DNA of 64,000 nt, taken from assembly GCA_965644295.1 (NCBI GenBank), contig CBFFRP010000024.1, positions 11,885 through 75,884 of the forward strand. The letters run 5' to 3'. The translations under genes were made by a program, and so were the position numbers. This stretch comes from Paraphysomonas bandaiensis. Taxonomy: Eukaryota > Protista > Chrysophyceae. Within the stretch, counting starts at the first letter, position 1. Each line of letters starts with the position of its first letter. The notes below the pieces were generated by a model. That model saw only the letters and a program-made list of their open reading frames with translations. It made no database searches and was not told the origin of the DNA. This document shows, in pieces, positions 15,091-51,261 of the stretch.

Positions 15091-18000
15091 TTATAACTCA
15101 ATTGTGTACCCTCCAGCTGATGCTGATGCGATACCTGTACTCGGTGCTGCTACAGAAGGAGGCATACTATAATACTCTGGTTCTTCAGCGGGAAGTTCCC
15201 AAGCAGATTGACCGTTGGCTTCATTGTACCAATAGTAATTACCGCTGTCATCCTGTAGCTGTATCCAGTCACCGTGCCTAACCGGTTCGTCCGCAGGAAC
15301 ATCCGCTGCAGCAGCCGCTTCAGCGGAATCGGCCTCCGCAGGTTTATCCCAAGAGGCTTCACCAGTAACTACATTATAGTAATACACATTGCCATCCGCA
15401 TCGACCATCTCACTCCAGTCTCCGAATCGTGGGGTGTCTTCACATATTTGATTGTCAACTTCCTGCTTGCTTGGGGTAGGGGGCGCTCTAGGGGTTGGTT
15501 CATATCCTTCAACTCGATAGCGTAACCGAAGTGAAAATTCGCCACAACCAGTGACACCATCATCATCGTGCAGCTCTCCGCTCATGTCAGTCCATCCATT
15601 GGGCGCATCTAATAACTTACCCATGGACAAGCTTGCAGTCAAATTTCGTAATTCACCATTATCGCCTTGTTGTTTGACATGAATTACAAGTAAATCGGCA
15701 TGGAAGTGAGAGAGCGGAATTTTCCCAGTAAAATCCAGGTATTTCCAAGATGTAACATCATCAACAACTGGTTCTACTGTGCTACTCTGTTTCCACAATG
15801 CTCCTTCATCGACCATTAAATCAACAAATACATTCGTAGGGCCTGATATGACTCGTTAGTACACACTAAAAGATATCACATCCAAACTTACATGTCACAC
15901 GGAGGTTACTAACGGAAATGGACATCACATCAAGGAATCCGAACTCCGTGTCTGAATCTTCTTCAGTTTTCTCAGCATCTGACGGTGCTAAATCCACTTT
16001 ATCTACTGTGGTCTCCCCCTCAACATCAGTGCCTTCTTGTGGTTGCGCTACATCTCCTGTAGTTCCAGACTGCTCCGTTTCTTCATTACACTTCTCTTCA
16101 TTTTGACACTGTTCAGTCGATTCGACGGGCTCTTCAATGTATGCTGGATCTGTAGCACCGCCACCTTGAGTAGCGGTATGTATTACGCTTTCAGATTCGT
16201 TATTCAAATCGTCACCCTCATTTATAGCCCCACCAGGGTGATCTTCGCTTAGTTTCACCTCGTCAGCAGTATTGGATTGCCTTTCACTATCAGTAGGAGC
16301 CTCCACCTCACTTGGTTCAACTGTGGGTGACACCTCCAGTTCAGGTTCGCCTGATGGTACTTCAACAGGTTCATCATCGGAAGGCACATCATCATACGGT
16401 TCTTCACCCCCATATCGATACCTTATTCTAATGGAGTACTCCCCACATGTATCATCGCCATCAGTATCAATCAGATTTCCATCCAATGTCGTCCACGTAT
16501 TCGATTGGACAACCATATCAGTGAGAGAGAGGCAAGTTTCACCAAAAATCTCACCATCTCTATATACTCGCAAAAGCATGAAGTCTGACGTAAGTTGATT
16601 TTCTGACACCAGTCCCGCAAACGGCAGATCCTTCCACTTCACATGGGACGTAGAAGGTATTTGAACATCCGTCGCATGCTGCCAGTCACCCAAACTTAAT
16701 TCAGCAAAAATATCAGTGGGACCTGTACATACACTTACATATAATTGAGAAAAAGTGTGACCCATACCAGAAATCTGCAGATTCTGCAACTTGATGCGAG
16801 AAACTTCAAGGTCCCCTTTGACATCGGCTTCCTCTTCTGCTGTTGGAGCGGCTTCTGATTGTGCACCAACATCCTGATTATCTGAATTATCATTGTCAGT
16901 GGTAGGATGATCTCCATTCCTCGCTAATTCGTCCTCACAATCTAATACGTCACCATCCTTGCAAGAAGGATCTTGGCTCTCCAATCTATACCGCACCAAC
17001 ACAAAAAACTCCCCATTTCCAGCATCGCCGTCTTTGTTCAAAAGTCGACCTGTAAGCTTAACCCATGAATTCGTTTTCTCAGTCAGAGACGCAATTGAGA
17101 GCGAAGCTTTGCCCAAGAACTTATCGTTTTGTTCATGATGTTGCTTTACACGTAGAGCGAATAAATCGTGACAAGCCTGCGCGTGAGATACTCTTCCGGA
17201 ATAAGCGAGATCTTTCCATTTCAATACAGGGCCATTATTAGAATCTGTAGAATGCTTCCATGTAGTTCCATCCCCTAGCTTCAACTCCACGAATACATCT
17301 ACATAATACAGTTGACAAAACATACACCATACACTACACCACCTACCACTACAGTCCAGTCCAGTCAGCGTGATGTGAGAAACCTCTAAATAAGCATCTT
17401 CTGGCCCTGCGATATACTTCAGTTTCTCATGAAGGGCGCTGACTTGTTCTTCCAAAGTTGCAATATTTTTTTTGTAAACCTCGACTTCTTTCGCATGTTG
17501 CTTCCTTAACTTGGCCATATCGGCTTCAAATTGAGACCGATGCTCTTTCACTGCGGCATCAATAGCTTTCTTTTTGGAAACATCTTCAGGTTTAGTTTTA
17601 CTCTCTCTTAAAACTCTAATTTCTTCTTTCATGGCGGATATTTGGAGTTCATATCTCTTAATCGGCTTTTCAAATTCATTACCAGTTGTAGCAGAAACAG
17701 CAAAGACATCATCAGGGTCAAAACAAGGAAACTCGTCGAAAAAATCCGCACGAGAATCATTCGCGGAGCTTGGTTTCAGATATTCATCATACAAGCCCCC
17801 ACCAGGCAAATTAGACGTGTCCTCTGCCATTGTCACTGATTTTACTTGAAGCGGTCGTCGCTTGCGAGGCACTTCGCGAGGTGGGGCAAGTGATAGGGGC
17901 ATGGACACCAGCTTCTCAGTTAATGTAATTGGAGCCAAAGTTACATCCGGTCGTGCAGATGGTTTACCAACGTACTTTAAGATGCTTGTCAAATTTCCCG

Positions 18001-20218
18001 ATAAAGAAAACATCAACCACTGTTGTGCGATCTCAAACGATAGTGAGAAAGGGTCAACCTTGTCTTGCACAGCGTGAAGGAGAGGGCTCAAAGAACTTGG
18101 TACTGCTTGCACAACTGCTATGACCTCATTCTCAAAGTTCATGATTGGAACAGAGTAGAAAGGCTCTGACGCTGAGTCGATATCTACTTGAGGATTGAGC
18201 ACAGGATCCGAGCCAGGACTTGAAACGAGGTACGGCTTCTTCGTTTTTACACAATAGCCAGCAACTCCAGAGTGCTTCGGATTATAACAGCACGACAGAT
18301 TAGACGCTTTGCAGTTCATCATGGCGATTGCTTGTTGCTGGAGAGAAATCAAATCACAGTCATCTAATCCAATCGCTTTGGATAATATAAATGCTTTTGT
18401 TTTAGAGCATTTCAATGAATCGCGTACGACATTCTCAAGAGTATACAAAACCTCCTCCGAAAGCAAGTCATTAGCTGCACATAGCGTCTCCTTCTCAGGT
18501 AGAGCTGCGTTCAGCTTGAGAGGGGCTTGAATCATAGTCGATATGATGGCTGATTCACTCCACACTCTGCGAAAAAGAATGCACGTTGCACTAAGAGCTC
18601 CTGCAAGCTCCCCATAGGAAGTCGCGTACAACTCATCCACTTCTGAAAACTTATTGTTGTCGCGTTTGTTGAGAAAATGTATTGCTCCAATTACACGGCC
18701 ATTTCCATGCTCACGAATAGGAACCGAGAGAATCCGCTTTAGTCCAAAGTCCCCCGCCGCATCAATATTAGGATTGAAGAATAGATTCTTAACTTGCTTT
18801 AAGTTGTTGTATCTTCGAATCAATCCATTTCTGATAACATTTTCTGCAATGGACTCTTCCTCGCCCACTTTAATTTTCTCGATAGTTTTGGAACCAGTTA
18901 CGTACCGATGCATGGTATCTCCTCCTGGTTGAAGAATGAATACGGACAGCCTCTCCGTATCAAATAACTGGCACACACGCCGATGACACAAGTGAAACGC
19001 CACATCCGCTTCAATGAGATTACAAGGTGTTGCCGCAAGGTGGGCAACCATGCCATCCATATGCTTTATACCTTCCATCGGATCGAATGCATTCCTATTC
19101 ACCAATGCGCTAAGGCGAGTGTCCATTCGCTCTTTGCTTTTCGTATTTGATCCTGAATTCTCTCGCCTGTCAGAATTGTCGGCATTCTTCGAAGCTTTCT
19201 TTTCCGTGGGACCGAAAGCCATTCCACTCTCAAGGCTCTGAATCTCTCTCATTTCATCAAGTTCCAATTGCAACTGTCGGTTCCTACGCTCCGCATATCG
19301 CAAACTCGACCGCAAGCCTTGAATTTTGAACTCTAAGTTTTCCACATTTTTAACGACTCTGTTATGCTCCTTAGCCACTCGTAAAAGTCTCTCGCGAAGT
19401 TTTTCGTTTTTCGTGACAGATATTTCTTGCTCCGCATTGGCATGTTTGGCAACATTCTTTGAACTACTTGGACGAGGAATACTTGTTTTTCCAGGAGATG
19501 GGGGAGTTGAGCCAATTTCGTCCATCGGAGTTAATGGTCGCTGATCAGGAGAACCGCTTCTGCGTTGTGTCGGAGATGCACGCATTGTCTGATCACTCAA
19601 ATTATTTTTTCTTCGTTGCCGTTGACTAGCATGAATTGATTTTTTACTACTTCCATCAGTAATTAAAGCAAATGCATCAATAAGTGTTTTATTTGTTGAT
19701 GATAAACGTGAGATTGCTTTTGAATTACGTATTGCATAATTTTGTCGTGATTCTGCATCATCTTGAAGGGCTCCTAACTTCTCTTCTAACATTATAATTT
19801 TTTCACGAGATAATTCACATCGTTGTCTTAATTGTTCCATTTCAGTTAATTTTTTCTTATGTTCACCTTTCAATGCCATGAGTTCTAATTTTACAGCATC
19901 ATACTGTTTTTGTGCATTCTCTGCCGTAAATGTTGCCATATTAACAACACTTGTAACTCTTTCTCTTACATCATATGGCATTTTGGCAATAATTTTATAT
20001 AATGCATGCATACCTGATGTAGAGGATGTATATGATATATTCTTACGATAATCTAAATCCATACTATTTGAACGATATTGTGGCTCTAATGTAGTAGAAT
20101 AAGGATTATTACGACCTTGTGGTCCTGGTGATGGTGTTGTAGGTGGTAATGTAGGTTTTTTACCCATATTTTCTGTAAGTGATATTGATTTTTTTGGACC
20201 AGTAGGATATTTTCTCAT
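15091..20218 (-). CDS. Large signalling-type protein: coiled coils, two GAF-like domains, three C2-like domains, two WW domains
   Basis: ILSVPIREHGNGRVIGAIHFLNK and FYSVPIMNFENEVIAVVQ (GAF-like). Three LEVS.I.L..L...D.F.EL.LG repeats (C2-like). WSEMVDADGNVYYYNVVTGEASWDKP and WIQLQDDSGNYYWYNEANGQSAWELP (WW). Introns at 17299-17346, 16723-16767 and 15843-15891. Confidence 0.85.
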
Positions 20219-29453: not shown

Positions 29454-32400
29454 TCACCGTGTGAGCATGCTTTCCATGCTCCTCCTTTGGGTAAACTTAA
29501 ACTTCTCGAAGCGCTTCTGAACATCACTCCCAGTTCTCTCTAATTCTACATCCGCGACACGCGCGTCCGATACATACTTTTCACAGACAACCTCACTTGA
29601 ACTTGACACAACATTATCTTTCTGTGGATTGTTGTGCCAAGTGGTCTCTTCATCACGAACATCTGTGGAGTCTTCACATGCACTTACACTGCATTTCAAC
29701 TCACTGTATGATTCATTTCCCTCATGAGATCGTGATTCCATCGCACTACTTTCAGCACTACTACAATCCCTATCATCGTTATGGACGCTTCTACTGTTAT
29801 CATTATGCATCATTTCACATCCTGATTCCACGTCATGATGTAACCTACTCGCTGCCATTTTACTCAGAGGAGAATTGACACAATCGGACGGATCAGAAGA
29901 ATGTAGAAACGATACCTCGCTGCTGTTTTGTATTATATGTTCGTCAGCAGGGGTTCTGGCAAGGGAATACTTCACTATGTAATACGCAATAACTAATGCA
30001 CCCACAAACGCTACAACCCCTATATATAAGGGGTTATCCCTTAAAATCACCCATACAGTGAGCACAAGTGCCACAACTATAGGCTGGAGACTGCGTACAA
30101 CAAGGCGTTGCAAAGGGGGGGGAAGAGCACCAATCCATTGCAGAAAAAAGATAGCTGCCGCAGTAAGTGAGAACCGCTCAGTTCGAGAATACAGAGAATA
30201 TCGACCAGTGATGGGAAGGGCGTGAGTTGTATTCCATTTGTATCCTATCTCGCCTGGAAAGTATGACCTAAAAGATCGTACTATTGAACTTTCAAACGTG
30301 TGTGGATAGGCCATTGCTACTCCAGTTGAAACGAAAAAATACCGTGGAGCATCAAGAACAATTTCCCCAATGTACTCATCGTCGTTTCCACAGGCCGATG
30401 AAATAGTTCTACGCAGAGCTGTTAACACAATCTGCACTTCGTTTTTCGCTAAGCTTGGAATAACGTACTGAATAATGCAGCACTCTGATGTCTACAAGCA
30501 AGAATCTAAAGTGTAGAAATTAACAAATATAGTGGCTATACCTCGAAGAACAAAATTTCCACCGCAATTTGAATAAGGCAAGCTGTTACAAACATTTTCT
30601 GCCAACGCTTTCCTCTTTCAAGCCCGCGAAGCATTGAGAAAAACACAAAAAACAGGTTTATCAGAATAACAACTACCCAGCTCAACACTTGAACCCACTT
30701 ATTTACAATCCATCTGTTACTGAAGCTGCAACAAATGTTAAATAAAAACACCGTGATGTACTGTAATGCTAAGTATACACACTTTTGCACTATTACTTAC
30801 TCATATTCCGACTTGTTCTTAAAAATCTTCGCCACAACAGTATCTCTCTACAGAGGAAGAAACCCGTCATCGTCAAGAACGTTAATACGATAAAATCAAC
30901 ACCCTACCCCAAGAATGTCGAGACAAAATAGTTGTATAATTTCCATTCCTATATGGGCACTTGAGGCGTTGACCAAAGATGCAGATTTTTCTTCCGTGGC
31001 CTTCTTCACATATAAAAGCTCAGATTTGATTACTTCCTCGCACTGCTTATTGGTAATATTTTGGCAACACATATATCTATAACTCATCACCGGATCTGAA
31101 GAAAGAAATTCACAGTGTGCATTAATTCTATACTGTTCAATCAGAAGAAGCAATAATGAGATATTTATCTATCCTGTACCTCCACTTCGAGTCGAATGCT
31201 TCTAACAAATGTTTTTGTAGTAATTTTCGCTGGTCAACAATATCTACCATAAGTTCTGCGAAGAGCAACTCTACCGCCGCTTCGTCGCCTTCAACTGCCT
31301 GCATTGAATCTATTGTGTTTTTTGCACAACTGAGTACGGGGATATAATCAGAACGATCCTGTGAGACAAGTTACCACGTATAGTATTTCTCTGTCAGAAA
31401 CTTACGCCTACTTCTACCAATGACTGCTGCCGCTCTATTTTTCTTCTGGAAATGAAGCCATCGTTTGTTTGACGAATTGAAGGAATGATATTCTTCGACG
31501 CTGCAGTCGCCAGTATATGCGACTCTTGTACGCGCGGAGGAAGATGTTTACTACTTCGTAGAGATATAAATGTTCCAGACGATTGGCGATTGAAATGAGA
31601 AGATATAGCATTTGTCAGCGACTGTGTAGCAGACGAAGCTGCATTAGAGAGGCGACGCGCAGTGGCAGAAAGTCTTCGTGTCAGTCTATTCACAAAGCCA
31701 TTTCGGTCAAACTCCTCTTGATGTAATGACTCTTGTGTGGGAGATGATAACAACTCAAACAAGAAATCGACAAATAAATTCATTGGGGCTGTGAACATCG
31801 CAACAACTACGGAGAATAAAACGACAACCTTCAAATACCTTGTCATGGAACCGCTCATCCAAATAAGCAAGATTACCTCTATAGTCAACTCAGGGTCTGA
31901 GTAAACACACCGGGGCGACCCGTCTTCTTCATGTACACTTGAATCATGTCGTTTCCAGGAACACATTGACCTTGACATGTCGTATGGCAGGGTAGCTTCC
32001 GTACAGTCTTCCTCGGTGGTATAGTTTTTGCACTCACCGTTGTCATCCGGAAACTAAACAGTAAAAATGTGAATATAAAATAAAATATGTTCATATACAT
32101 ACCTCAGTATCATACAAAACAGCAAGCAAAAACATTAACATTGACTGAATAGTAAGCACATACAATACAGAGAGAACTTTGATATTAACCGAATTGTCAC
32201 CGAGGTTGGAAAACACCAAAAAACACCGATGATGTCTCAACAATTCCTTACTTAACTTGGACAGAGAAGATCCACACCGAAACACTTCAGGGCAAACTGA
32301 ATTCACATACGCCAATAGGATATCATATATTTCATCTTTCGAACACGAATCCTCTCGTTTTAACGACTTGCACATAGCAGTGAGTGTATCAAAACTTATT

Positions 32401-35400
32401 TCCGCTTGCGTACTCTTTGCGTTCCATATGATAACAGCTATTGCAAAAAACCCAATGGCCCACATAATGCCGAAGAGTAATACTACATGTAAACTATATT
32501 CAACATCCGATTCAGAATCAAAATTACGAGCAGTAATTACAGTGTCCTCAGCTTTCTTCAGTTCTGTCGATGTGATTACCCCTACCTCCATTACGCCCGA
32601 ATCTTGAAAGGCATCCAGACGACGCTCATCGGAACGGGGTACGATCTCCCTATCGGTGGTACAAAAACAAGTCGCATTATGCGATGAATAGCTCAACGTT
32701 TCGCACCTAACACTAGCACTATTCAACACTTTGCACCTCGGGATAAGTGCTCTTTGTGGGCATACAGATGTCTGTACAAGGTCGCTTCCATTGCAATAAT
32801 GAACAATATCATGCCCGGTATTGTTCTCACAAGAATAGTAGTACGTTGCAACCTCATTTCGATTGCACTCTGTCGTAAATGATATCGGGTTTTCACTGAT
32901 TGTGATATTTACGAAATCATTGTACTGAATGGAAAATATCACCGGTGATGCAATTGTGACATTAACTTCACCTTTTATTGATAGACGAAGAACATTCGAC
33001 ACTAATGATAGATTGTATAGTTTAGACTGCAATGACAAAAGGGAAACGCTGAGCTCGTTTTGACCAGATATTATCGTGCATGTTGATGGTATTGATACAA
33101 CGGCGGCCTCCAGATCAGTCCGAGGAACACTTAGTGTCAAATTTTCGTCATTGAGTAGCACCTTTTGAGTAACGAGCCGATACGTTTCCTTAATAGCATA
33201 CACCGATTCTTGGCCAACAAGCATGTCACTCAACACAATATTTATCATTTTGTCTAGCAAAGTCAATGATGAAGTGCTATTCTGCGGATATAACCCATGT
33301 GAACTCGTGGCGGAATCAATAGCGTCCATCACACTCCAAATATCACGATAAAACAAATTATAGTTTGCACTCTTACTTAGCACAACGTCAGACACGTTGC
33401 GTGAGACAACATTCCCAGCTTCTCCAATTGCATATGAATTGATTACGACAGAGGACTGTAAATTAGACCACGATGTAATACTATCTTGGGTCGGATCATC
33501 AATCTGGACAAGCTGGTTGAGAGCATCTAGCATTGCAGTAACTGTATCAGATATTACAATCGAACTTGCAGATGTATATTCACAAGCTAGTCCACTGTAA
33601 CCCAAATCACATATACATTGTGTTGTACAGGTTGGGTCTCCAAGGAGACATATATCTATGGTCATCCCCGAATCATTATTTACAAAAGTGCACTTTCCAT
33701 GACTTGAGCAGTTGTTTGCACAATGAATTGTCTCCCTTACGCACTGTTGATCAATGCAGCTTTCCCATGCTGAACATTCAATATTATTACTACAAGAACC
33801 TCCCAGCTGAGACACATCTTGTGTTGGTATGCACTCTGTGTTATCATCTCGCTCAGTTCCAACATAACTATCAAGACATTTTCCACATGTATGAGCAACC
33901 AAAGTGCAGGGGAATCTATTCAATTCTGAACAATTGGGGGAGTTGAAGCATGGGACGCTATTCACAATAACAGATGACACTGAAATAGTTTCACGAATTG
34001 TATCTGTTTCAATCCCGTTGTCGAATTCATAGGACAAATCTGTTGAGAACGGATACACATATATATCTGCACTGGTTCTGGAGAAGGCATCCAGAGAATC
34101 ATACACGTTAGCGGAACATGTAACTCTCCACAAGCTTGAATTTTTACCTGATGGAAAATAAGAAGATGTATACGTTTTTTCTGACCGGCCATGAACAACT
34201 AAAAATATATCGTAATCTGTACGAAATCCAAATTCGTATGAAAGTAAAAGATCGTCGTCTGTGTACTGAGATGCTGATAAAACAAACGAAGTGCTCATTT
34301 CATACCCACTGGATGGGTTAATTTTAAATATCCCAGGAGCAGGTGGCGTATTCATAGAAACCAAAATGGTGACAGCGTTGTTCTCACATTGCAAAGTGAA
34401 TGAGTATGCGGACATTTTACTCATCAATGACCTAGAAGCGATTACCAAATTCATATCATTCACACCAGGATGTAACTGTTTGTCTATGGAAGTTAACGAT
34501 AAGCCAGATAAATCTAATCCATCATCAGAACGCCATGATGCAGTAACAGTACTATTCACTTCAACAACACCAAGAATAGCTATCTCACTCTGTGGATTAA
34601 CTTTAACAACATTTTCATCAGAATTTTGCACGACAATTCGGGCTGATGACGAAGGAAGTATTGTTACAAACACGTGTGTCTCGCTTTTTCGACTTGAATC
34701 AGAGATCTGCAACGTTATCTTGAGCATTGTCCCAACCTCATTGGAATTACTGACATGAATCTGAAGTTCACCACTTTCGGTAGTATAGAGCTCCGCCCCA
34801 CAATCAGAACTCAGGACAGGCTGTTGTCGATAGCAGGACCATAAAAAATTCAAGTGAGAAATCCCGGGAGCATCCTGGTCATAGCTCTTACCACCACTTA
34901 GTATCAGGGAATCTCCCAACTTTACGGTTTGATAAGATGACCCAGATATAATAGGTACTATCCTCCCACTTTCCACAGTAACATACACTGAGGCCGATGA
35001 AACGTAGTTCGTATTGAAAGCATTGACTAGCACATCAAATCTATACACCGATCCAACTTGCATGCTGTAAGGAGAAAGCTTAAACTTCATATGATCAGGA
35101 GATATCGAAGTCAATGTAGTCAGAAGATCATTTTCCCATACAGACCACGTGTAAACTAAACTACTACTCATAGTATTATTGTTCCAACTACATGGTGCAA
35201 AAAACGCCTGTGCCTTCAAATTCAAGCTTCGTATGGAAATAATACGCCTCGTGTGAGCGCCAATAATGCTGACAGTGGGCAAAGGCTCTGACAGAACATG
35301 CAGATAGTAGGTTGCATTTCCACATGCCCCAAGAAAATTACAAAGCCGTATAAAGAAAGAGTACGATCCTGCTTCCAGTTTGTCACTGGACAGTTCTGTA

Positions 35401-38400
35401 GGAGGCGATATCTCGTAAGAGTTTTTAAAAAATGATTCAATATCATTCACAACAGCACTACCATTGACCTGTCCACTACCAGGAGAGTAGTTAATATTTA
35501 CAGTAAGAGACCCCCAATGTCTCCCACCGTCCCCTACAGAAGCTGTTAAGTCCAATATGAGTGGCTGACAAATCCCAAGTGTTGACGGAGCTGACACTGC
35601 AACATTAGGAGGAATTAGAACAACTGGAGGTGTTGTGTTAACAGTCAGTGCATCCATTGTGCTCCAGTTACCACACTCAGCACTGCTGTATGTACATTTC
35701 GCTCTGATGAGACAACAATTAACACCAATTGTATCTCCTACAACAATGAGGTCGTCAGTGCTTTCAACATCACGGTACCTCACCGCAACATATTTATCTG
35801 AGAGCCATTCACATGAAGCATACTTCGCTCCCCTAAAAGCGAAGAGGGTATCGCATGGGAAGGGAAGCGACTGGCGACCTCTATCTGTAGCGGAGTCGAA
35901 AACTATTTCGAGTAACTCCCCTGTGGTGGAAAACGTAGCCGATAACAACTTCGGTATCGGTGGTTCTGAATTAACCTCGTACACAGAAAGTGTGGTCTGC
36001 TGAAAAACTGCTTCGTATTCATTTGCGGAATCTCCAGAGAAATCGACCACTAACTCATAATCCCCAGCAACCGGTCTATTTAAATCAAAGTAACGGGGCT
36101 CCGACCAATCTTGTGACGTTAATGTTACATTAGGGGGAAAAAATGGATAAAATAGCTCCGTGCTCATATTCCCATCAACGCGAACAGCACTCACAGAAAC
36201 CACTACAAAATTTGACGGCCTACTGTTACCTGTTAGAATTAGAGCATTCTCAGTAATTAACAGCGCGGGATACTGGGTACTTGAAAATGAGAATAATATT
36301 TCCTTACAACAAAGAGTTTGCGCTCGCTTCGTAGTTTGAAGCATGTACTCATAGGTATAGATATCACTCGCTGATGTGCAATACACGTTGTACCAAGTAA
36401 ATGGATAAAGTGCTGATATATGTACTACACCAGACATTGCATAGTGCTCTTCCACTAAAACAGCAGTTTTCGACAAAGGAATTGTAGTATTCGTCTCATA
36501 CGCAGAACATAATATCGGCTCAACGTCAGCAACGGAAACAAAAATACGTAGTCCTTGTCGACAGCTTTCTATTGCTATAATTGACAGCATTTCTGAAGGG
36601 CGACTAGAAGGAAGAGCGGATGGAGTAAACGTAGGGTCCATGCTCCATAAAAACGAAGATGGCAGTACTGTGGGGTGTGGTGGCCAATGAATAGATGGCT
36701 GTGATGATGGGACACTTGTTAGAGGCGTTATCTCACAGACGTAGCCCTTTTGGTGGTTCACTTCTTCGATTTCCCACAATCCATCTTCCATCATAATAGC
36801 TGCGTTGCCATTCTTGAGATCAATACCAACTTCAAAATTAGTGTAATCGGACTGGGGTTCAACATCGTTATCCCACATCCAAACGCCGTCTGAATCACTA
36901 TCGGAAAACCCAATGTAGACGCCATTCGTACTCTCACATCCAAGCGCATCACCAACAGCTTCCACCAGATAGGAATTCTCATCATCGTCCTGAACTGCAA
37001 CTAAGTATCCACCAAGCGAATTGCAATATGACTGAGCTGTTATGTAATTGTAAGGGTTGGATTGAACCTGATAACAATGGCCGCCGTAGAGACTGAAACC
37101 TGCTGGACATTTTACTGTTGTGGAAATAGAACATGGAACGCGTGAGGCTTCACAAGTATACGTATTTTTTTCCTCGCACGAGCAGTCTATCCAATCCCCA
37201 TTTTCGATAATACAAGCACAGTCCATGTTTGTGTCATACTCTACCCAATTGGTATAATTCCCAGTCCCAGATCCATCTTCCCACAGCCAAATCCCTTCTG
37301 TTATGGAATCTGTATACCCAATAAATCCTTTCCACAATAAGCAGGAATTAAAATATGCACTCCACGCTACATCAAACACACTTTGCTCATTCGCAGTATT
37401 TATAGAGACTATATATCCGCCATTTTTCGAACACTCCGACCTAATGTCTGTGAAACTTTTTTTCGACGAACTGAAGTAGTAGCAATAGTCACCGTCATTG
37501 TATGCATGAAAGCCAGGTGGGCAGCAATACTTGGATGTTGTAGGAGATATTGTAGGATACGACGATATAAAATTGATCATAGACGCATTCGGACCTAAAT
37601 TATAATTTACTCTAACCTCATCGTCACTCAGGGCACCGTCCCAAATGCGAAACTCATCGAATAAACCAAGCAAGCCGTCATTCTCCCTACTGAGAGAATA
37701 CAACGCCTGGTCACTACTGTGCGGTATTGGTATACCATTCATAGGTAGTTCACCCGTTAGTTCTCCATTTATATACAAGCGCATCGTATCAGAAAACTCA
37801 CTGCAAACCAAGGCAATGTAATGCCATGAGTTGTCGAATACAACATACGATACTACATTGACATATTGCTTGCCATCATCACTGCATATCGAACAATACA
37901 GTGAGCTAAAAAGCTGTCTCCGCGAGCAGAGAATATAGGGGCAAGTATCATCACTGCTCCCAAATTGAAACACCTTTGCATTACCAGAATTTTCACCGGC
38001 GTAAACCCATGCTTCAATAGTGACAGCTTTCAGGGAATCCAAGAGTGTATTAGGAAGCTTCACAAACTGATTCACATCATCAAAATGAACCTTACCATCA
38101 CTTATATATGCACTATTGAATAGCTCCCCATTGAAATCAGTCCCCCCTACAGAGTCAACTACTACGTTACTGTAGTTTGTTGTAAAGGAGTATCGATGAA
38201 TCAGTGATGCCCCTGTTATCTAACATCATACAATCATATTCCATAATAAATAACACTAACCGATAGAACTTGTCCTGATTTCATCTTTACCATCACTATT
38301 CAATAACTGATGAGAACTACTGAACTCATTACCATGAACTACGTCCTGTGACTGCAATGAGGCCAACACAATGCATCGATAGAGTGATAGATAACATAAA

Positions 38401-40801: not shown

Positions 40802-41072
40802 CAATCTTTATCGTGGCATAATATACGTCTACTCTCCAATTGGAATAATAGTTCCGAGCTGAGAGCTGTCAGAATCATACATGACTGTGTGTTGAGCTCT
40901 GTACAATGCGATATGGCGATATATATACGTATCACTGTGCTGTATGCTACTGTATACTGCATACTCCTGCAGGATTTTTTTTGGTTTGCGACACCACTCA
41001 GTAGTTCTTATTGTAGTTTATTGTATTATCGTGTATACCATTTACTACTCGATCCTGTAAAGATACACGCAT

Positions 41073-41359
41073 CGTAGAGGAATGAGAGGATGTTCTTTTC
41101 AGTTTAGTACTTGAAGTGACTGTATAAGATATGCATAGGGCACATAGAGGTGTATGGTGTTATGTTATGCAGTGTGTAGTGTACGGCTGTAGAATAGAGG
41201 CATAATTTCCTCTTACTGAGAAGTTCTGTAGTAACGATAAAGAGAACCTTGCTTTGACTACCTGTAGTGTAGACTGTGTGAAAGCAACGGGGGTATTCCG
41301 TCCGTTTATTGATTTGTAACATCCGTAACATTCGACCGAGTACCGTATTTTTCTCTGCG
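41073..41359 (+). repeat. 5' LTR of the copia element
   Basis: Direct repeat of 45771-46057; starts CGTAGAG, ends CTCTGCG. Confidence 0.95.
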
Positions 41360-41371
41360 TAAGAGGAAATT

Positions 41372-44300
41372 ATGAAGAAGACAACGAACGACAAGCCAAC
41401 AAGATTTGCAAGATTCGGCAAGAAACCGAGCACCGATAGACCAGAACATGTACCGACTTTAAGATATGGTGCCAACTCAAACTTCGCCACATTCAAACAG
41501 AGGCTTGTAGTGGTGGGCATGCAAAAGTACGGTGATCTTGCACGCCTAGTAGAGCTGGACAAATATTATGAGCCCGATGCGATAAACCCAGAGGATTTTG
41601 ATTTGGAAGACGACCCCTATGGAGTTAACCTCGACCTGATGAAGGACAAGACCAAGACCAGAGGGAGATTAATAGACAAGATGCGGAACGATAGATCGGC
41701 ATTCTACTCATTCATGGTAGACCATCTGAGCCACGAATCAATGGATGCAGTCAAGCTATTAGATGAATACGAGCTCATGAACAGGACTAAGGATCCTCTA
41801 CTACTATGGCTGGCTATCAAACAAACCCACAAAGTATCCACTAACTCCAGCGTAAGTACAGTGGTACGAGCAGAAGCGAGGAAAAGGTACAAAGACGCTA
41901 AACAGGGAGCATATGAGAGTATAGTTACTTATAAGGAGAGGTTTGATCATCTATTAGAAGCCTACAAAGACATGAACAACGCGGAAATGAATGAAGAGGA
42001 CATCGCGATGGATTTCTTCGAAGGGCTGGACGACACGAGATATGGCGAGTTCAAAACTAGCTATCTCAACGATCTAACAATGGGAACGCAAACAGCACCT
42101 ACACACGTAAATGAAATATATACTAAAGCATCAAAATATCTAACGCCGAAGAGAGCAACGAGAGCAGGCGGCGGATCTGCATTCGTGAGCAAATCGAAGT
42201 CTGAGAAAGGCAAGAAATCAGCAGATAGCGATGATACACCAGAGCAGCAACAAGGGAACGACACGAAGTCGCACAACAGCAAACGTGGTCAGAAAAAAAG
42301 GCAGCTCATATGTTGGGGCTGCGGTGAGCCAGGCCACAGAATGAACGAATGTCCCGACAGCAGTCAAGAATCAGAAAACAAGCACTGCACGACAACAATG
42401 TTGAACGCCTTCACGTCAGGAAGCGAGCCATTCCAATGGTACGAAGTATTACTCGACAATCAGGCGGATGTCTCGGTAGTACACCCAAGACTACTGAACA
42501 ATGAAAGACCGGCGTCCAGAGGATGCACCGTGGCGGGATTATCGGGACACGCACTGGAACTACCGAATGTAGGCGAGCTAGACCAATTCTTCACCTGTAA
42601 GACAGCAGATGAGCTAAGGGCAAGCGTACTATGTCAGGCGGACGTAGAAGACATATATGAAGTGACATATAGGCAGGGAGAGTCTTTCACTGTGCACTTA
42701 CCTGACAGTGATTTGACTTTCTATCGAAAGAACAAGATGTATGTGGCCGACATGCGCGACTGGGCGACGGCCAAAGTCAACGTAACGACTGTAGCGGAGC
42801 GCGAAGCCCAATATTCGAAAGTAGAAGTCGCGAGAGCGCGAGAAGCACGAGACCTGATCCGAAACTCGGGCTTCGACTCGGAGAGAGATGCTGTGCAGCT
42901 AGTGAGCGACGGAAACGTTACAGGGGTGCGACTTACCCCGAGTGATATCAGAAGAGCTTTTGACATATATGGGAGACCGTTCGAAGCGGTGAGAGGCAAG
43001 CAGACGAATAAGAAAGTCAGCCGGCAATACGCGGATCCGGAACTGAAGGCAGAACAGCAGAAGGAGCAAAGGCTGTACACAGACATCTTCAGTGTGAGAC
43101 AGCAATCGTTCATGCTCACACTAGCGGAACCATTGGGACTAACCATCGTTACTTCACTCGAAAACGAAACAACGGATCAGTTGGGATTGGCCTTACAGGA
43201 ACAAGTAAACCTGTTAAGAAGCTACGGATATATACCGACAGTTACCTACCTGGACCCTCAGCCGGGATTCAAGGCCCTGAGAGGCAAAATCTCAGGGATG
43301 GAGATTGACGTGGCAGGGGCTGGAGATCACCTGGACAAGATCGACGCGAAGATTAGGCGACTCAAAGAGACAATACGCAGTGTACATTCAGGGCTACCAT
43401 GGAACCTACCAGATGCCAACGTCAGAGACCTGGTGAGATACGCCAACAGCCGCATGAACTTGAGGAGGCCATCCACCAATGGCACAACTGTAGCACCGCG
43501 AGTGGCATTGACTGGTCGGAAACCCAATTATAAAAAGGAACTGTCACTGGCTTTTGGGGACTACGTAGAATGTTATGACCCGAAGGTCAAGAGCAATAAC
43601 GCGGAGCAGGCCAGAACAGAACCATGTATCGCGCTGTATCCATCCGGCAACGCAAACGGGAGTTGGATATTTTTAAACCTTAAAACAAATAAATATGTGA
43701 GTAGGACCAACTGGGTGAAGATGGTGACCACGCAAATAGTAATAGACGCCGTGAACAGAATATCGTCATTGCACAACAAGTCACACTCACCTGTCACGAC
43801 CAGCGAGAATGAGAGTCGAGAGATCGAGGATACCACGCCACCAGCTGAGAATGACGAGATCGATAAGCCGAAGGAGCCTCACGAGGAGGGGCAGATGACA
43901 GCCATTGACACAGACGAAGGGCACGGCCACACAGAAGAGAGAGAGAGAACAAAAATCACGGAACTAGTCGACGATGATGGCGACAGGGCTGATGGGCCGA
44001 GCGAACAGGAACCGGGCGCTGCAACACCCAACGACATCGACGATCCGGAAATTACAGGGGTGGAAACTACAGGGATGACACACAATACAAGCGAAGTACT
44101 ATCATCACCATCAGCCGGAGCAAGGATAGCGGCAGGCACAAGAAGAAAGCCCGTAATGTATCGAGCCTATCACACAAGCGTAACCAAAGGTTTAAAGGAA
44201 CACGGCAAAGAAGCCTACCTGGCGATAGTACGGGAGCTGAAGCAGCTGCTGCATGAAAAAAAGGCGATAGTTCCAGTACACCGGAGTGACCTGTCAAAGA

Positions 44301-45754
44301 CTCAACTCAAACGAACAATTCGATCGCTGATGTTTTTGAAGACGAAATACGACGGACTCGGAAGGTTCGAGAAAATCAAGGCGAGGCTGGTTGCGAACGG
44401 GGCACAGCAGGATCGGAAACTGTACCCAGACACGTCGTCACCCACTGTGGACATACAGTCAGTATTTGCATGCCTAGCAATAGCAGCGAGAGAGGGGAGA
44501 CATGTATCGACAATTGATATAGGTGGTGCATACCTCAATGCGGAGATGTCAGGCGAAGAGGTAATAATGGAATTGGAGCCGATGTTGGCCACAATACTCA
44601 GAAAACTAGACCCCACAATCCAGCCGTATGTTGATGAAAGAGGCAAAATATTGGTGCGCCTAGACAAAGCGTTATATGGATGCGTGCAGAGCGCCAAGCT
44701 CTGGTACAACACGATAAGAGCTTACCTGGAGAGCATTGGTTTCGTGGCTAACCCGGTGGATCAGTGTGTTCTCAATAGGACTGTCAACGGCAAGCAGTGC
44801 ACTATAACACTACACGTGGACGATCTGCTAGTGCTATCACAAGACAAGCGTGACACCGAGTGGTTGGTGGAACAACTAAAGAAACAATATGGTGAGGTAA
44901 AATACTGTGATGAGAAAGACATGTCGTATTTAGGTATGCATGTGAGCATGATAGATGACAGGGCAGTGGTGTCAATGAGGGCTTACCTAGACGGAGTGCT
45001 GGAGGAGGCAGCGGTCACTGGCAGAGCAGCATCTCCAGCGACATCATCACTGTTCGCAGAGGGCGCAGGACAGAAATTGGGGAGGAAGGAGGCTGCCAAT
45101 TTCCATTCAGTGGTGGCCAAATTGCTATATCTGTCAATAAGAGTTAGACCAGACATCCTGCTCAGTATAGCGTACCTCACAACAAGAGTGAAGGGTCCGA
45201 CAATCGGAGATCAGCAGAAGTTGAATCGAGTGCTGAAATACCTTGCGCACACAAGGGATCAAGATCTGCAGCTGAAGATTGGAGAACAGCTGCGGGTAAG
45301 AAGCTTCATCGACGCTTCGTTCGCCACCCACGAAGACGGAAAAGGGCATACAGGCGTAGTTGTACAGCTTGGAGGGGCCACAGTACTATGCCGATCAACT
45401 AAGCAGCGAATCGTGACGAAGGACTCGACCGAATCCGAGCTGGTCGGCCTATCTGATATGATGTCTAATGCAATGAGATTACATGAGTTTGTGTGTGGGC
45501 AGGGCTATGCGCTTGACCCACCTGTTATTTATCAGGACAACTTGTCGAATCTCAGTCTCGTAACGAAAGGAGGAGGCAAATACCGATCGAAATATCTACG
45601 AGTAAGGCAGGCTTTAGTCGAAGAACACCATGATAGGGGAGACGTGAAGCTTCAGTACTTACCTACAGGAGAGATGTTGGCTGATGTGCTGACTAAACCC
45701 CTACAAGGAAAATTGTTTCGTCATTTGATATGTCTGATCGTTGGGAACGAGTAG
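41372..45754 (+). CDS. Copia Gag-Pol polyprotein (gag, CCHC knuckle, protease, integrase, RT, RNase H)
   Basis: CWGCGEPGHRMNEC, LLDNQADVSV, integrase before RT, KARLVANG, DIGGAYLNA, KALYGCVQSA, LHVDDLL, FIDASFATH, ADVLTKPL. Confidence 0.97.
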   Translation: MKKTTNDKPTRFARFGKKPSTDRPEHVPTLRYGANSNFATFKQRLVVVGMQKYGDLARLVELDKYYEPDAINPEDFDLEDDPYGVNLDLMKDKTKTRGRLIDKMRNDRSAFYSFMVDHLSHESMDAVKLLDEYELMNRTKDPLLLWLAIKQTHKVSTNSSVSTVVRAEARKRYKDAKQGAYESIVTYKERFDHLLEAYKDMNNAEMNEEDIAMDFFEGLDDTRYGEFKTSYLNDLTMGTQTAPTHVNEIYTKASKYLTPKRATRAGGGSAFVSKSKSEKGKKSADSDDTPEQQQGNDTKSHNSKRGQKKRQLICWGCGEPGHRMNECPDSSQESENKHCTTTMLNAFTSGSEPFQWYEVLLDNQADVSVVHPRLLNNERPASRGCTVAGLSGHALELPNVGELDQFFTCKTADELRASVLCQADVEDIYEVTYRQGESFTVHLPDSDLTFYRKNKMYVADMRDWATAKVNVTTVAEREAQYSKVEVARAREARDLIRNSGFDSERDAVQLVSDGNVTGVRLTPSDIRRAFDIYGRPFEAVRGKQTNKKVSRQYADPELKAEQQKEQRLYTDIFSVRQQSFMLTLAEPLGLTIVTSLENETTDQLGLALQEQVNLLRSYGYIPTVTYLDPQPGFKALRGKISGMEIDVAGAGDHLDKIDAKIRRLKETIRSVHSGLPWNLPDANVRDLVRYANSRMNLRRPSTNGTTVAPRVALTGRKPNYKKELSLAFGDYVECYDPKVKSNNAEQARTEPCIALYPSGNANGSWIFLNLKTNKYVSRTNWVKMVTTQIVIDAVNRISSLHNKSHSPVTTSENESREIEDTTPPAENDEIDKPKEPHEEGQMTAIDTDEGHGHTEERERTKITELVDDDGDRADGPSEQEPGAATPNDIDDPEITGVETTGMTHNTSEVLSSPSAGARIAAGTRRKPVMYRAYHTSVTKGLKEHGKEAYLAIVRELKQLLHEKKAIVPVHRSDLSKTQLKRTIRSLMFLKTKYDGLGRFEKIKARLVANGAQQDRKLYPDTSSPTVDIQSVFACLAIAAREGRHVSTIDIGGAYLNAEMSGEEVIMELEPMLATILRKLDPTIQPYVDERGKILVRLDKALYGCVQSAKLWYNTIRAYLESIGFVANPVDQCVLNRTVNGKQCTITLHVDDLLVLSQDKRDTEWLVEQLKKQYGEVKYCDEKDMSYLGMHVSMIDDRAVVSMRAYLDGVLEEAAVTGRAASPATSSLFAEGAGQKLGRKEAANFHSVVAKLLYLSIRVRPDILLSIAYLTTRVKGPTIGDQQKLNRVLKYLAHTRDQDLQLKIGEQLRVRSFIDASFATHEDGKGHTGVVVQLGGATVLCRSTKQRIVTKDSTESELVGLSDMMSNAMRLHEFVCGQGYALDPPVIYQDNLSNLSLVTKGGGKYRSKYLRVRQALVEEHHDRGDVKLQYLPTGEMLADVLTKPLQGKLFRHLICLIVGNE

Positions 45755-45770
45755 ACACATCACAGGGGTG

Positions 45771-46057
45771 CGTAGAGGAATGAGAGGATGTTCTTTTCAG
45801 TTTAGTACTTGAAGTGACTGTATAAGATATGCATAGGGCACATAGAGGTGTATGGTGTTATGTTATGCAGTGTGTAGTGTACGGCTGTAGAATAGAGGCA
45901 TAATTTCCTCTTACTGAGAAGTTCTGTAGTAACGATAAAGAGAACCTTGCTTTGACTACCTGTAGTGTAGACTGTGTGAAAGCAACGGGGGTATTCCGTC
46001 CGTTTATTGATTTGTAACATCCGTAACATTCGACCGAGTACCGTATTTTTCTCTGCG
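45771..46057 (+). repeat. 3' LTR of the copia element
   Basis: Direct repeat of 41073-41359. Confidence 0.95.
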
Positions 46058-47004
46058 CGCATAGTGGTACTTAACTCACACATATGATGCAAGGTATGTG
46101 TATATTAAAGTGTTGACCTCATTAATGTATTCATATTCTATATCGACAAGATAGCAGTACTGTTTTTCAAGTTGACTGTATGCTACATATACATATGAGT
46201 GTATCGAGGACTAATCTATTCGTATATATATCTGATCACACCACATGCAATCGATAGCATCAATAGAGGAATCAATAGAGGAGTCTTTAGAATTACCCCG
46301 CTCCATAAAACATTCGAAATCCTGTATGTCAAGAATGGAATCGAAAAGATGCATACTCCATACATAACACAACTGAAGCTTTTGTTTTACTCTCAGACAT
46401 CTAGTTGTGGTAAACTTAGAAATGATTTCACCACATATATCACAATTTCTATATATTTTCAATACAACATAGTCTTAATAATCACCAAATTCTATAACTG
46501 AACTCGCTCATAAGTGATGTTGTTTCAATCTCAGTGAAAAGAACTCATAGTAAAGTAGGCAAACTTGTGTCGTAGTTATAAAGGAATAAAAGTCTTTTAC
46601 AAAGACATGCATCATTGTGATCATTTAGGGGTTGAGCTGCGAGCATATGATAACCAAAGAATGACTGAATAACAGATGTCCACCAGCTAGTGTACGAAGC
46701 AATGTAATATAAATTGCTTGGATCAATAATAACATTTTTTTCTTAACAAGTATTAAGCATGGTATACCACAAAGCAAGTTTAAGGATACATAGTAAGAGG
46801 ATACAATGCATTCATTTCCACCATAATCGGAGGGGGTAGCGAAGTATTTAGTGTACTATGCGCTTCCATCTTTTAATTACGGCGGCAACAATAAGTACAA
46901 CTACACGAATACTCAACTAATTCCGCCCATTATAATGTAGCAAACAAGTACTATAGCACACCCTAATTACGCAGTTACCTATTCATACAAATTTATAAAA
47001 TAGA

Positions 47005-49465: not shown

Positions 49466-49975
49466 CTTTACTATATGAATATATATGTGTATATGTGTAT
49501 AATGAGATCTATATAATTATGAATATGATGCGTGTCTATCTACTGAACTCATCATTGTTCTTTCTAGGTATGTCTGTGTGTATGTATGTATATCCATATT
49601 GGACACTTCATAACATTATTGTAAACGAAGTGATTTGTTGGACTTCAGAATCAGATTTTTTCTTCACTTCATATACTGCTGTACGTGTATGTACTCTGTA
49701 TGTGTACCATATATAGGAGACAATATACTGGACTTTTTATATGGATATCTGATACACTGGTGTATGTGTTGCATAATATTATGAGTGAGAGTGGTGCAGG
49801 ACCTGCTGTATTCTGCTGTATTTTGTATCATAAAGAATTCTACGTACAGTATATTCTTCTCATTTCATATCGACAGAAAACCCCTAATTTATGAATAAAT
49901 ACTTGATTTCGTTCTTGTGGTGAAGAAATAGCAGTAGTTTTTGTGCGAATGGACAGTTATGTGGACGGAACTGTT

Positions 49976-50430
49976 GCAGGAATGATACTCGAGAAGTAAC
50001 AGTGTTGTCTGCAGGAGTGATACTCGAGAAGTAACAGTGTTGTCTGCAGGAGTGATACTCGAGAAGTAACAGTGTTGTCTGCAGGAGTGATACTCGAGAA
50101 GTAACAGTGTTGTCTGCAGGAGTGATACTCGAGAAGTAACAGTGTTGTCTGCAGGAGTGATACTCGAGAAGTAACAGTGTTGTCTGCAGGAGTGATACTC
50201 GAGAAGTAACAATGTTGTCTGCAGGAGTGATACTCGAGAAGTAACAGTGTTGTCTGCAGGAGTGATACTCGAGAAGTAACAGTGTTGTCTGCAGGAGTGA
50301 TACTCGAGAAGTAACAGTGTTGTCTGCAGGAGTGATACTCGAGAAGTAACAGTGTTGTCTGCAGGAGTGATACTCGAGAAGTAACAATGTTGTCTGCAGG
50401 AGTGATACTCGAGAAGTAACAATGTTGTCT
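49976..50430. repeat. 35-bp minisatellite, 13 near-perfect copies
   Basis: GCAGGAGTGATACTCGAGAAGTAAC(A)(G/A)TGTTGTCT x13 head-to-tail, no spacers. Confidence 0.97.
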
Positions 50431-51261
50431 GTTGCTGATCTCAGTGATATGGAGTACACTCCTGAATAGAGTATAATACAGATAGAGACTATGAGAGGGA
50501 TCTTGCGGAGCATATACATCCACTAAATACTGTACAGTGGTGTGTGAATAGTAATTGTAGAGGGAATGAGTAGAAGAAAGCGTATGTAACTGTCCATTGT
50601 TGCTGTGTTTAGTAATACGACCACTGCAGTATTAAAATCATGTGGAATTTGGATTCTTATGGTAAAGTAGTGATTATTGATTCTTACTGTCATACGATTT
50701 TGACTGTACCAGCATTGAATTTGAAGGCCTTTGGTGTGTTGTTGAGCAAGAGTTTAGGATGTCTGTTCTGGGGGCCGCTATGGAGATTTAGTAATACGAC
50801 AACTTTTGCATATAGTGCATCAGCTGTATTATGTTGGTAGTAGGGCCTTAATTGAGTGTGATAATGATGTTCCTATTGAACTAAAAAGTATAATTTGTTC
50901 CTACTTAATTTTGCAGATGTTCCTACTAAACTTAAATGGCAGTTGTGCCATATTTAAGTATAGTAGAATCGATAAAAATTTAGCTTAGTTGGAATGTATG
51001 CAAAATTTAGCAGGCTCAGCTGCCATTTTTATTTTAGTAATAACAAATGAAAAATTTAGTAGGGACTAATATATTTTCGCAAGTCAGAGTTATGGTGCGA
51101 ATACGAGTGCTATTGTACCATTGGCACCAATACAGTGTAATACTGCAGCACGGTTATTTTATATTTTCACATTTCTTAACTTTACCAACTGATTCAGCTC
51201 ACAATAACTGAATTAACAAATTAGAGTATTGTAGTAATATTGTTTATAGTCATTATATATA

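Follow-up and report, generated by a model that had tools for sequence, protein, structure and literature searches.

The copia-type long terminal repeat (LTR) retrotransposon at positions 41073-46057 of a 64,000-nucleotide stretch of Paraphysomonas bandaiensis DNA (contig CBFFRP010000024.1; the whole stretch is here called the window) probably starts minus-strand synthesis from a primer of its own, as Tf1 does. This complete element of 4985 base pairs is referred to as WIN, and related contigs and loci carry the numbers L001-L101. The reading is carried by the anatomy of the element, by the abutment of the pairing site on the LTR, by an exact pairing that co-varies throughout the lineage, and by the transcript of one relative, which starts within the pairing arm and has a very short R region. 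An earlier note on the same DNA had proposed a self-primer within the LTR, a primer-binding site abutting the LTR and priming independent of transfer RNA (tRNA); the pairing kept in relatives, together with the relative’s transcript that places the arm at the start of R, supports this core proposal.

Bases 41201-41216, within the 5' LTR, and 41359-41374, at its 3' end, are exact reverse complements over 16 nucleotides, and the match extends to 19 of 21 positions when 41201-41221 is set against 41354-41374. This arm pair, whose 5' member lies 142 nucleotides upstream of the primer site, is the longest inverted repeat in 41073-41420. As a control, the upstream sequence was put through 200 dinucleotide-preserving shuffles and compared each time with the zone around the ATG start codon; none of the 200 gave a complement of 16 nucleotides, so the repeat described in the earlier note is both exact and beyond chance. 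Its statement that no site starting with TGG follows the 5' LTR of WIN holds as well. The RNA of 41201-41384 is predicted to fold at -52.7 kcal/mol (z = -3.56), with the 16-base-pair duplex closing a multibranch loop; the internal stems that had been drawn there are present in this fold, including TTGCTTT/AAAGCAA (41249-41255 with 41281-41287), as is the GAGAAG/TTTCTC helix. Conservation of the latter is, however, confined to WIN and L002, with L003 and L096 using AGAGAA/TTCTCT. The AGAGAA/TTCTCT helix is itself conserved only within the WIN subclade (alifold of WIN, L002, L003 and L096), and over 38 elements, helices that would join the end of U5 to the stretch downstream of the primer reach no significance (median z = -0.33, Wilcoxon p = 0.09). 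The features on which the pairing depends are as follows.

41073-41359, + strand: 5' LTR of 287 nucleotides, 100% identical to 45771-46057
41073-41200, + strand: predicted U3
41201-41359, + strand: predicted R plus U5
41201-41202, + strand: predicted transcription start, CA
41201-41216 (LTR positions 129-144), + strand: predicted self-primer (5' arm), CATAATTTCCTCTTAC, exact complement of 41359-41374
41241-41246, + strand: AGAGAA, partner of the U5 end in a second helix (fold; alifold of WIN, L002, L003 and L096)
41351-41356, + strand: TTCTCT at the 3' end of U5, pairing with 41241-41246
41359-41374, + strand: predicted primer-binding site (3' arm), GTAAGAGGAAATTATG, starting on the last LTR base (G41359) and including the start codon
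41372-45754, + strand: single gag-pol open reading frame (ORF) of 1460 amino acids, with its ATG at 41372-41374

Related elements were compared after the stretch running from the stop codon through the LTR to the start codon had been rebuilt, either from contig end overlaps or from both LTRs. Nearly all of these relatives lie on contigs of roughly 5 kilobases from Tara and other marine and lake metagenomes, with one cluster derived from the transcriptome of the diatom Chaetoceros sp. GSL56, and the 45 distinct relatives show 29-75% protein identity. An exact complement of 10-18 nucleotides joins the same two positions in 42 of the 45, in each case with a sequence of its own; the earlier note had named co-variation of the site and its LTR complement as a check, and pairing is indeed kept while the sequence changes. 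In 38 distinct elements, the zone just before the ATG pairs with an LTR site 62-314 nucleotides upstream, mostly over 14-17 nucleotides; L099 and L101 bring two further paired elements, and L008 and L031 are paired too once a misassigned ATG is allowed for. Qualifying pairing is absent from three of the 45 (L071; L077, which has 8 nucleotides in the right place; and L027, whose LTR is incomplete), and TGG is found at the site in no element of the family.

The manner in which the two arms change is illustrated by L003 (68% amino acid identity), in which CATAATTTTCTCTTAC pairs with GTAAGAGAAAATTATG (one compensated change, none uncompensated), and by L096 (59%), in which CATAATTTTCTATCAC pairs with GTGATAGAAAATTATG (three compensated changes, none uncompensated); L002 (75%) has a pairing of 14 nucleotides, its ATG being shifted 7 nucleotides beyond the duplex. 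When each site was compared with the LTRs of other elements, a control that preserves composition and relatedness, the median pairing was 7 nucleotides (95th percentile 10), as against a median of 15 with the element’s own LTR. The arm search counted exact Watson-Crick runs only, and the lack of G-U pairs or mismatches inside the arms is therefore true by construction and is not independent evidence. In a quick maximum-likelihood tree of the reverse transcriptase (RT)-RNase H region, pairing occurs in both major clades, and WIN and the Chaetoceros element fall within the same well-supported clade.

Most metagenome contigs of the family (including L002, L004, L005 and L008) have k-mer-length end overlaps of 30, 55, 99, 123, 127 or 141 nucleotides, and their circular permutation is the expected assembly loop of an LTR element. 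The ends of Logan, Tara and JGI contigs are uninformative on the transcription start, because these are circularly permuted DNA assemblies with k-mer end overlaps. In L021, L026, L031, L037, L057, L067, L080 and L101, the LTR runs into the start of a second element, which indicates tandem copies or circles. The end of the ORF upstream of the LTR in L003 (L003:1-170) resembles L001 and not the 3' end of L003 itself, and the contig may be a chimera of two families that are close relatives. The LTR and primer site of L003 lie together on an unbroken stretch of about 300 nucleotides.

Both edges of the duplex occupy defined positions. In all seven loci in which the LTR end is fixed by two LTRs (WIN, L096, L097, L006, L007, L030 and L077, four of them also fixed by a target-site duplication), the 3' arm begins no more than one base away from the first nucleotide beyond the LTR (offset -1, 0 or +1). 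At the 5' arm edge, a CA dinucleotide is present in 33 of 38 elements versus a background of 15.6%, typically as tc/A, tca/N or /CA, where the slash marks the edge. A pyrimidine followed by A is the usual start dinucleotide of RNA polymerase II, and CA at the arm edge is the pattern expected if complementarity is maintained only for transcribed bases. Of 38 leaders, 35 include the duplex in their minimum-energy fold. The ATG lies inside the duplex only in WIN, L001, L003, L096 and L026; the buried start codon of the earlier note thus stands for these elements but not elsewhere, the ATG being found 1-48 nucleotides past the duplex, and a switch between translation and replication is limited to a subclade at most. 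As a separate observation, the 5' arms of WIN, L007, L010, L036, L057 and L068 open with ATAATT or the palindrome ATAATTAT, as do the primer sites of L014, L018, L026 and L028, and in L099 the motif comes directly after the arm; it may be a promoter or initiator element.

Transcript evidence comes from L099, a 5111-nucleotide transcript contig from Chaetoceros sp. GSL56, which begins with AACATAATTTGTGAACA followed by U5, and ends in gctcaCTTTTTAAAGTAAACATAATTTGTGAACA followed by five A’s, with the poly(A) site 14 nucleotides after the arm. Immediately after the LTR end CTTTCAAC comes the primer-binding site of this element, (G)TTTACTTTAAAAAG; the LTR sequence with which it pairs, CTTTTTAAAGTAAAC, has its last base 3 nucleotides into the contig, which is 12 nucleotides short of the start of the arm. 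A 5' end within the arm, together with a poly(A) site 14 nucleotides after it, places the U3/R boundary at the arm; what the contig shows is RNA reaching into the arm and no start far upstream, not a start at the first base. R is 17 nucleotides long as seen, this being the stretch shared by the 5' end and the 3' end before the poly(A) (L099:1-17 versus L099:5090-5111), or at most 29 with a start at tcA, where the arm opens, and after primer removal the first strand transfer would have only 14 nucleotides of R left. The contig L100, an isoform in this Chaetoceros assembly with the same ends, is not independent of L099; these two are the only clear transcripts among the contigs looked up for 5' ends, L098 being an internal fragment. 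No contig besides these two showed a poly(A) end in a scan that required six or more consecutive A, or 18 A among the final 25 nucleotides, thresholds at which the 5-A tail of L099 itself is not flagged. L098 is an MMETSP transcript fragment with 98-99% nucleotide identity to WIN (versus 41907-43440), which indicates that the WIN family is expressed. It is without two internal stretches (element positions 1526-1624 and 2260-2335) and its halves lie in different reading frames; these gaps may reflect deleted copies or spliced forms.

In the mechanism that we propose, transcription would start at the CA of 41201/41202 inside the 5' LTR, and the first 15-16 nucleotides of the RNA would fold back over about 140 nucleotides to pair with 41359/41360-41374, directly after the LTR. 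The element’s RNase H would cut where the pairing ends, 3' of A41215 or C41216. Extension of the freed 3'-OH, which would begin at the LTR end as the earlier note proposed, would run across U5 and what remains of R and give strong-stop DNA, which would transfer to the 3' R. Plus-strand strong-stop synthesis would copy the attached RNA primer, such that every cycle would renew the primer-binding site from its LTR copy and keep the arms perfectly matched, in analogy to retroviral primer sites, which are restored from tRNA. Rewriting of this kind would explain the long exact runs of the arms.

A number of points weigh against this mechanism. Beyond the pairing, what happens in WIN is inferred at every step, from the transcription start and the cut by RNase H to the priming itself and the renewal of the site. 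The sole transcript contig stops 12 nucleotides short of the arm’s start, and the 10-11-nucleotide arms of some relatives fall in the upper tail of the cross-element control. The central duplex of Tf1 sits in a three-duplex ‘pretzel’ (PMC10085805), and the extra helices required in Tf1, including a U5-IR-like stem, are without family-wide statistical support in the WIN lineage. A tRNA-fragment primer, finally, appears to be excluded by argument only, from the diversity of the sites.

Among other explanations, the pairing might be a structural RNA element (serving translation control, packaging or dimerisation) that closes the 5' leader, the true primer being something else. We regard this as unlikely: the duplex does close a stable leader fold (z = -3.56), and in WIN it holds the AUG and the cap-proximal bases and would hinder translation, but the helix edges are pinned, one within 1 nucleotide of the LTR end and the other at CA, the AUG lies outside the duplex in most relatives, and no alternative primer site, whether TGG or a conserved sequence, stands beside the LTR in any element. 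It is very unlikely that the primer is instead an internal piece of a host tRNA, in the way that copia and Ty5 are primed by half tRNA-Met, and that the LTR complement of the site is incidental. TTATGA within the WIN site TAAGAGGAAATTATG presumably resembles the complement of the Met anticodon loop, a weak likeness that we count in favor of such a primer. Half-tRNA priming does occur in copia lineages (PMC6317226), but the family has about 40 different site sequences, each matched by its own LTR, whereas a shared tRNA would conserve the site. There is no Rfam match in 40900-46200. No tRNA gene with which the site could be compared is found in the window or in any of the loci retrieved.

That the region is AT-rich and of low complexity would favor a chance match, but the shuffles (0/200) and the recurrence of the same arrangement with different sequences in 42 of 45 relatives leave chance with practically no probability, and we reject it as refuted by the comparative data. 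Self-priming might also draw on another copy of the arm than the cis 5' end, either that of the 3' LTR, a few nucleotides before the poly(A), or that of a co-packaged second RNA. In the Chaetoceros transcript, no more than 14 nucleotides separate the arm from the poly(A) site, and most of the arm is missing from the 5' end as assembled, as this variant would have it, but a 5' loss of about 12 nucleotides is usual in RNA-seq assemblies. The cis 5' copy, moreover, lies 62-314 nucleotides from the site and is paired with it in the minimum-energy fold of 35 of 38 elements, and the Tf1 precedent uses the 5' end (PMC7175516); we consider priming from another copy decidedly unlikely, and priming from the cis 5' end remains the reading that we prefer.

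Self-priming has been described for Tf1 (PMC7175516, PMC10085805), and WIN shares with the Tf1/sushi group (Tf1, Tf2, Tosmo, Tcry1, Tj1, sushi and Tcn1) a primer-binding site immediately downstream of the 5' LTR that is complementary to the initial bases of the element’s own RNA (the start being predicted in WIN), the lack of a tRNA site, and a pairing that is kept among related elements (PMC7175516, PMC10085805). In contrast to this chromovirus lineage of Ty3/gypsy, outside which it falls, WIN belongs to another superfamily, with an RVT_2 reverse transcriptase near the C-terminus of the polyprotein and no chromodomain found there by Pfam. The paired stretch is 14-18 nucleotides in most WIN relatives versus 11 in Tf1, the duplex of the WIN lineage often takes in the last LTR base, the LTR termini of WIN are CG...CG whereas fission-yeast elements have CA at their LTR end, and the start codon lies inside the duplex in the WIN subclade.

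Within copia, the plant families Houba and Osr-1 have been put forward as self-priming, and the whole plant TAR lineage, which includes them, is predicted to prime in this way (PMC6317226), so the tRNA-independent priming of a copia element put forward in the earlier note is supported but is not unprecedented. In silico, a self-primer has been defined by a complement of at least 10 base pairs that starts 0-5 base pairs after the LTR (PMC6317226). WIN has such a complement, as does TAR, which likewise belongs to the copia superfamily and carries the complementary stretch within its LTR (PMC6317226). The hosts of TAR are land plants, whereas the WIN lineage comes from marine and freshwater plankton metagenomes and a diatom transcriptome; the two lineages may be related or may have come to self-priming independently.

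Other copia lineages without a conventional tRNA site differ from WIN in the nature of the site. The fungal GalEa elements, with their Conserved Hairpin Site, have a conserved structure at this position in place of a tRNA primer-binding site, but that structure is a local palindrome or hairpin with no LTR complement (PMC5445492); the WIN site forms no hairpin, its partner lies in the LTR (62-314 nucleotides upstream family-wide), and WIN, with this partner 142 nucleotides upstream, is not of the GalEa type. Half-tRNA priming characterizes Osser, Bryco and some Gymco-II elements (half tRNA-Met), as well as Bianca (half tRNA-Ile), and these sites, like that of WIN, do not start with TGG (PMC6317226). 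In the half-tRNA lineages, however, the site is conserved and the primer is a host tRNA, whereas in the WIN family almost every element has a different site, which finds a match only in that element’s LTR.

Among the transposons of diatom genomes, those of copia type predominate (PMC2806351). The CoDi lineages of diatom copia resemble the WIN family in that at least one WIN relative has a diatom host and some CoDi families are without TG/CA ends (PMC2806351); compared by description, WIN has 4985 base pairs versus 5182-8062 for CoDi (PMC2806351). The paper that defined the CoDi lineages contains no analysis of primer-binding sites (PMC2806351), and the full-text literature, subscription journals lying outside this coverage, yielded no account of self-priming in the copia elements of diatoms, CoDi included, or of other stramenopiles. 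The mechanism thus appears to be of a known kind, in a lineage where a description of it was not found.

WIN is an intact, recently inserted copia-type LTR retrotransposon, and its remaining features are listed below.

41068-41072, + strand: target-site duplication CGCAT, 5' copy, with the same 5 nucleotides at 46058-46062
45762-45770, + strand: putative polypurine tract, ACAGGGGTG, adjoining the 3' LTR (role inferred)
45771-46057, + strand: 3' LTR of 287 nucleotides, with a second copy of the arm at 45899-45914
46058-46062, + strand: target-site duplication CGCAT, 3' copy

The LTRs end in CG...CG, forming the imperfect inverted repeat CGTAGAG/CTCTGCG (41073-41079, 41353-41359), and not in TG...CA. 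In several relatives the terminal inverted repeat CGTTGA...TCAACG is perfect, others end in AACA, and the LTR end follows the pattern TTTCT(A/C)AC(A/G), its last base usually lying within the primer duplex. At the 3' LTR, the junction of CACAGGGGTG with CGT(A/T)GAGG is common to WIN, L001-L003 and L085-L095. Target-site duplications of 5 base pairs are found in relatives too (ATTGA in L030, TTGGT in L097), and the window holds no second copy or solo LTR of the element. The stop codon of WIN lies 16 nucleotides before the 3' LTR; in L084 and L099, the polyprotein stop is a TGA within the first six LTR bases (GTG followed by CGTTGA), such that the ORF enters the 3' LTR and almost no non-coding internal sequence is left.

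Pfam recognizes a single significant domain in the 1460-residue polyprotein, the copia-type reverse transcriptase RVT_2 (residues 983-1218; E = 1.2e-26; 94 bits versus a cut-off of 31.6). A CCHC zinc knuckle at about residues 314-328 matches retroviral nucleocapsids, and conserved D/E motifs of RNase H type are found at the C-terminus. The position of this gag zinc knuckle and the placement of the reverse transcriptase near the C-terminus are compatible with the Ty1/copia order (gag-protease-integrase-RT-RNase H), and WIN, with RVT_2 and a target-site duplication of 5 base pairs, belongs to Ty1/copia. Protease and integrase have no Pfam match even at E <= 1; these domains are unusually divergent, beyond recognition by Pfam, and the region that would hold them (42362-43771, residues ~330-800) contains residues that are invariant across 21 relatives, such as D362, D571, D628 and H653.

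Elsewhere in the window, which has a G+C content of about 40%, the neighboring genes are long intronless ORFs (GAF, REJ/C-type lectin, ankyrin). The ORFs at 32091-38075 and 15866-20218, both on the minus strand, encode a 1994-amino acid protein with LamG, C-type lectin and REJ domains and a 1450-amino acid GAF-domain protein, respectively. Two host proteins were searched against databases, and their best relatives are plankton proteins with 53-59% identity; the host genome is poorly represented in databases, as the best relatives of the GAF protein are only 59% identical. A tandem array at 49975-50431 consists of 13 copies of a 35-base-pair unit with 99% identity, is flanked on both sides by degenerate copies (49870-50536), and overlaps minus-strand ORFs at 49884-50523.

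If this plankton lineage needs no tRNA primer, the annotation of its copia elements changes: annotation tools will report ‘no PBS’ (primer-binding site), because they seek sites complementary to tRNA, and the pairing of the arms offers an in-silico means of placing the U3/R boundary. The very short R of the Chaetoceros transcript (17-29 nucleotides) and the start codon within the duplex are testable oddities. It is possible, if doubtful, that self-priming was already present in the ancestor of an entire major copia lineage of diatoms and other plankton and is used almost universally there, and that each family would own a private, fast-evolving ‘barcode’ of primer and site, owing to the proposed rewriting of the site from the LTR copy in every cycle, that insulates it from other families and from host tRNA-fragment defences; in the WIN subclade, the duplex would also hide the cap-proximal bases and the start codon, with one fold deciding between translation and replication. 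An ancestral form of hairpin priming has been mentioned as an idea (PMC3601003). After plant TAR, WIN and its relatives would be the second copia case, one that is phylogenetically distant and bears on whether self-priming in LTR elements is of ancient or of repeated origin.

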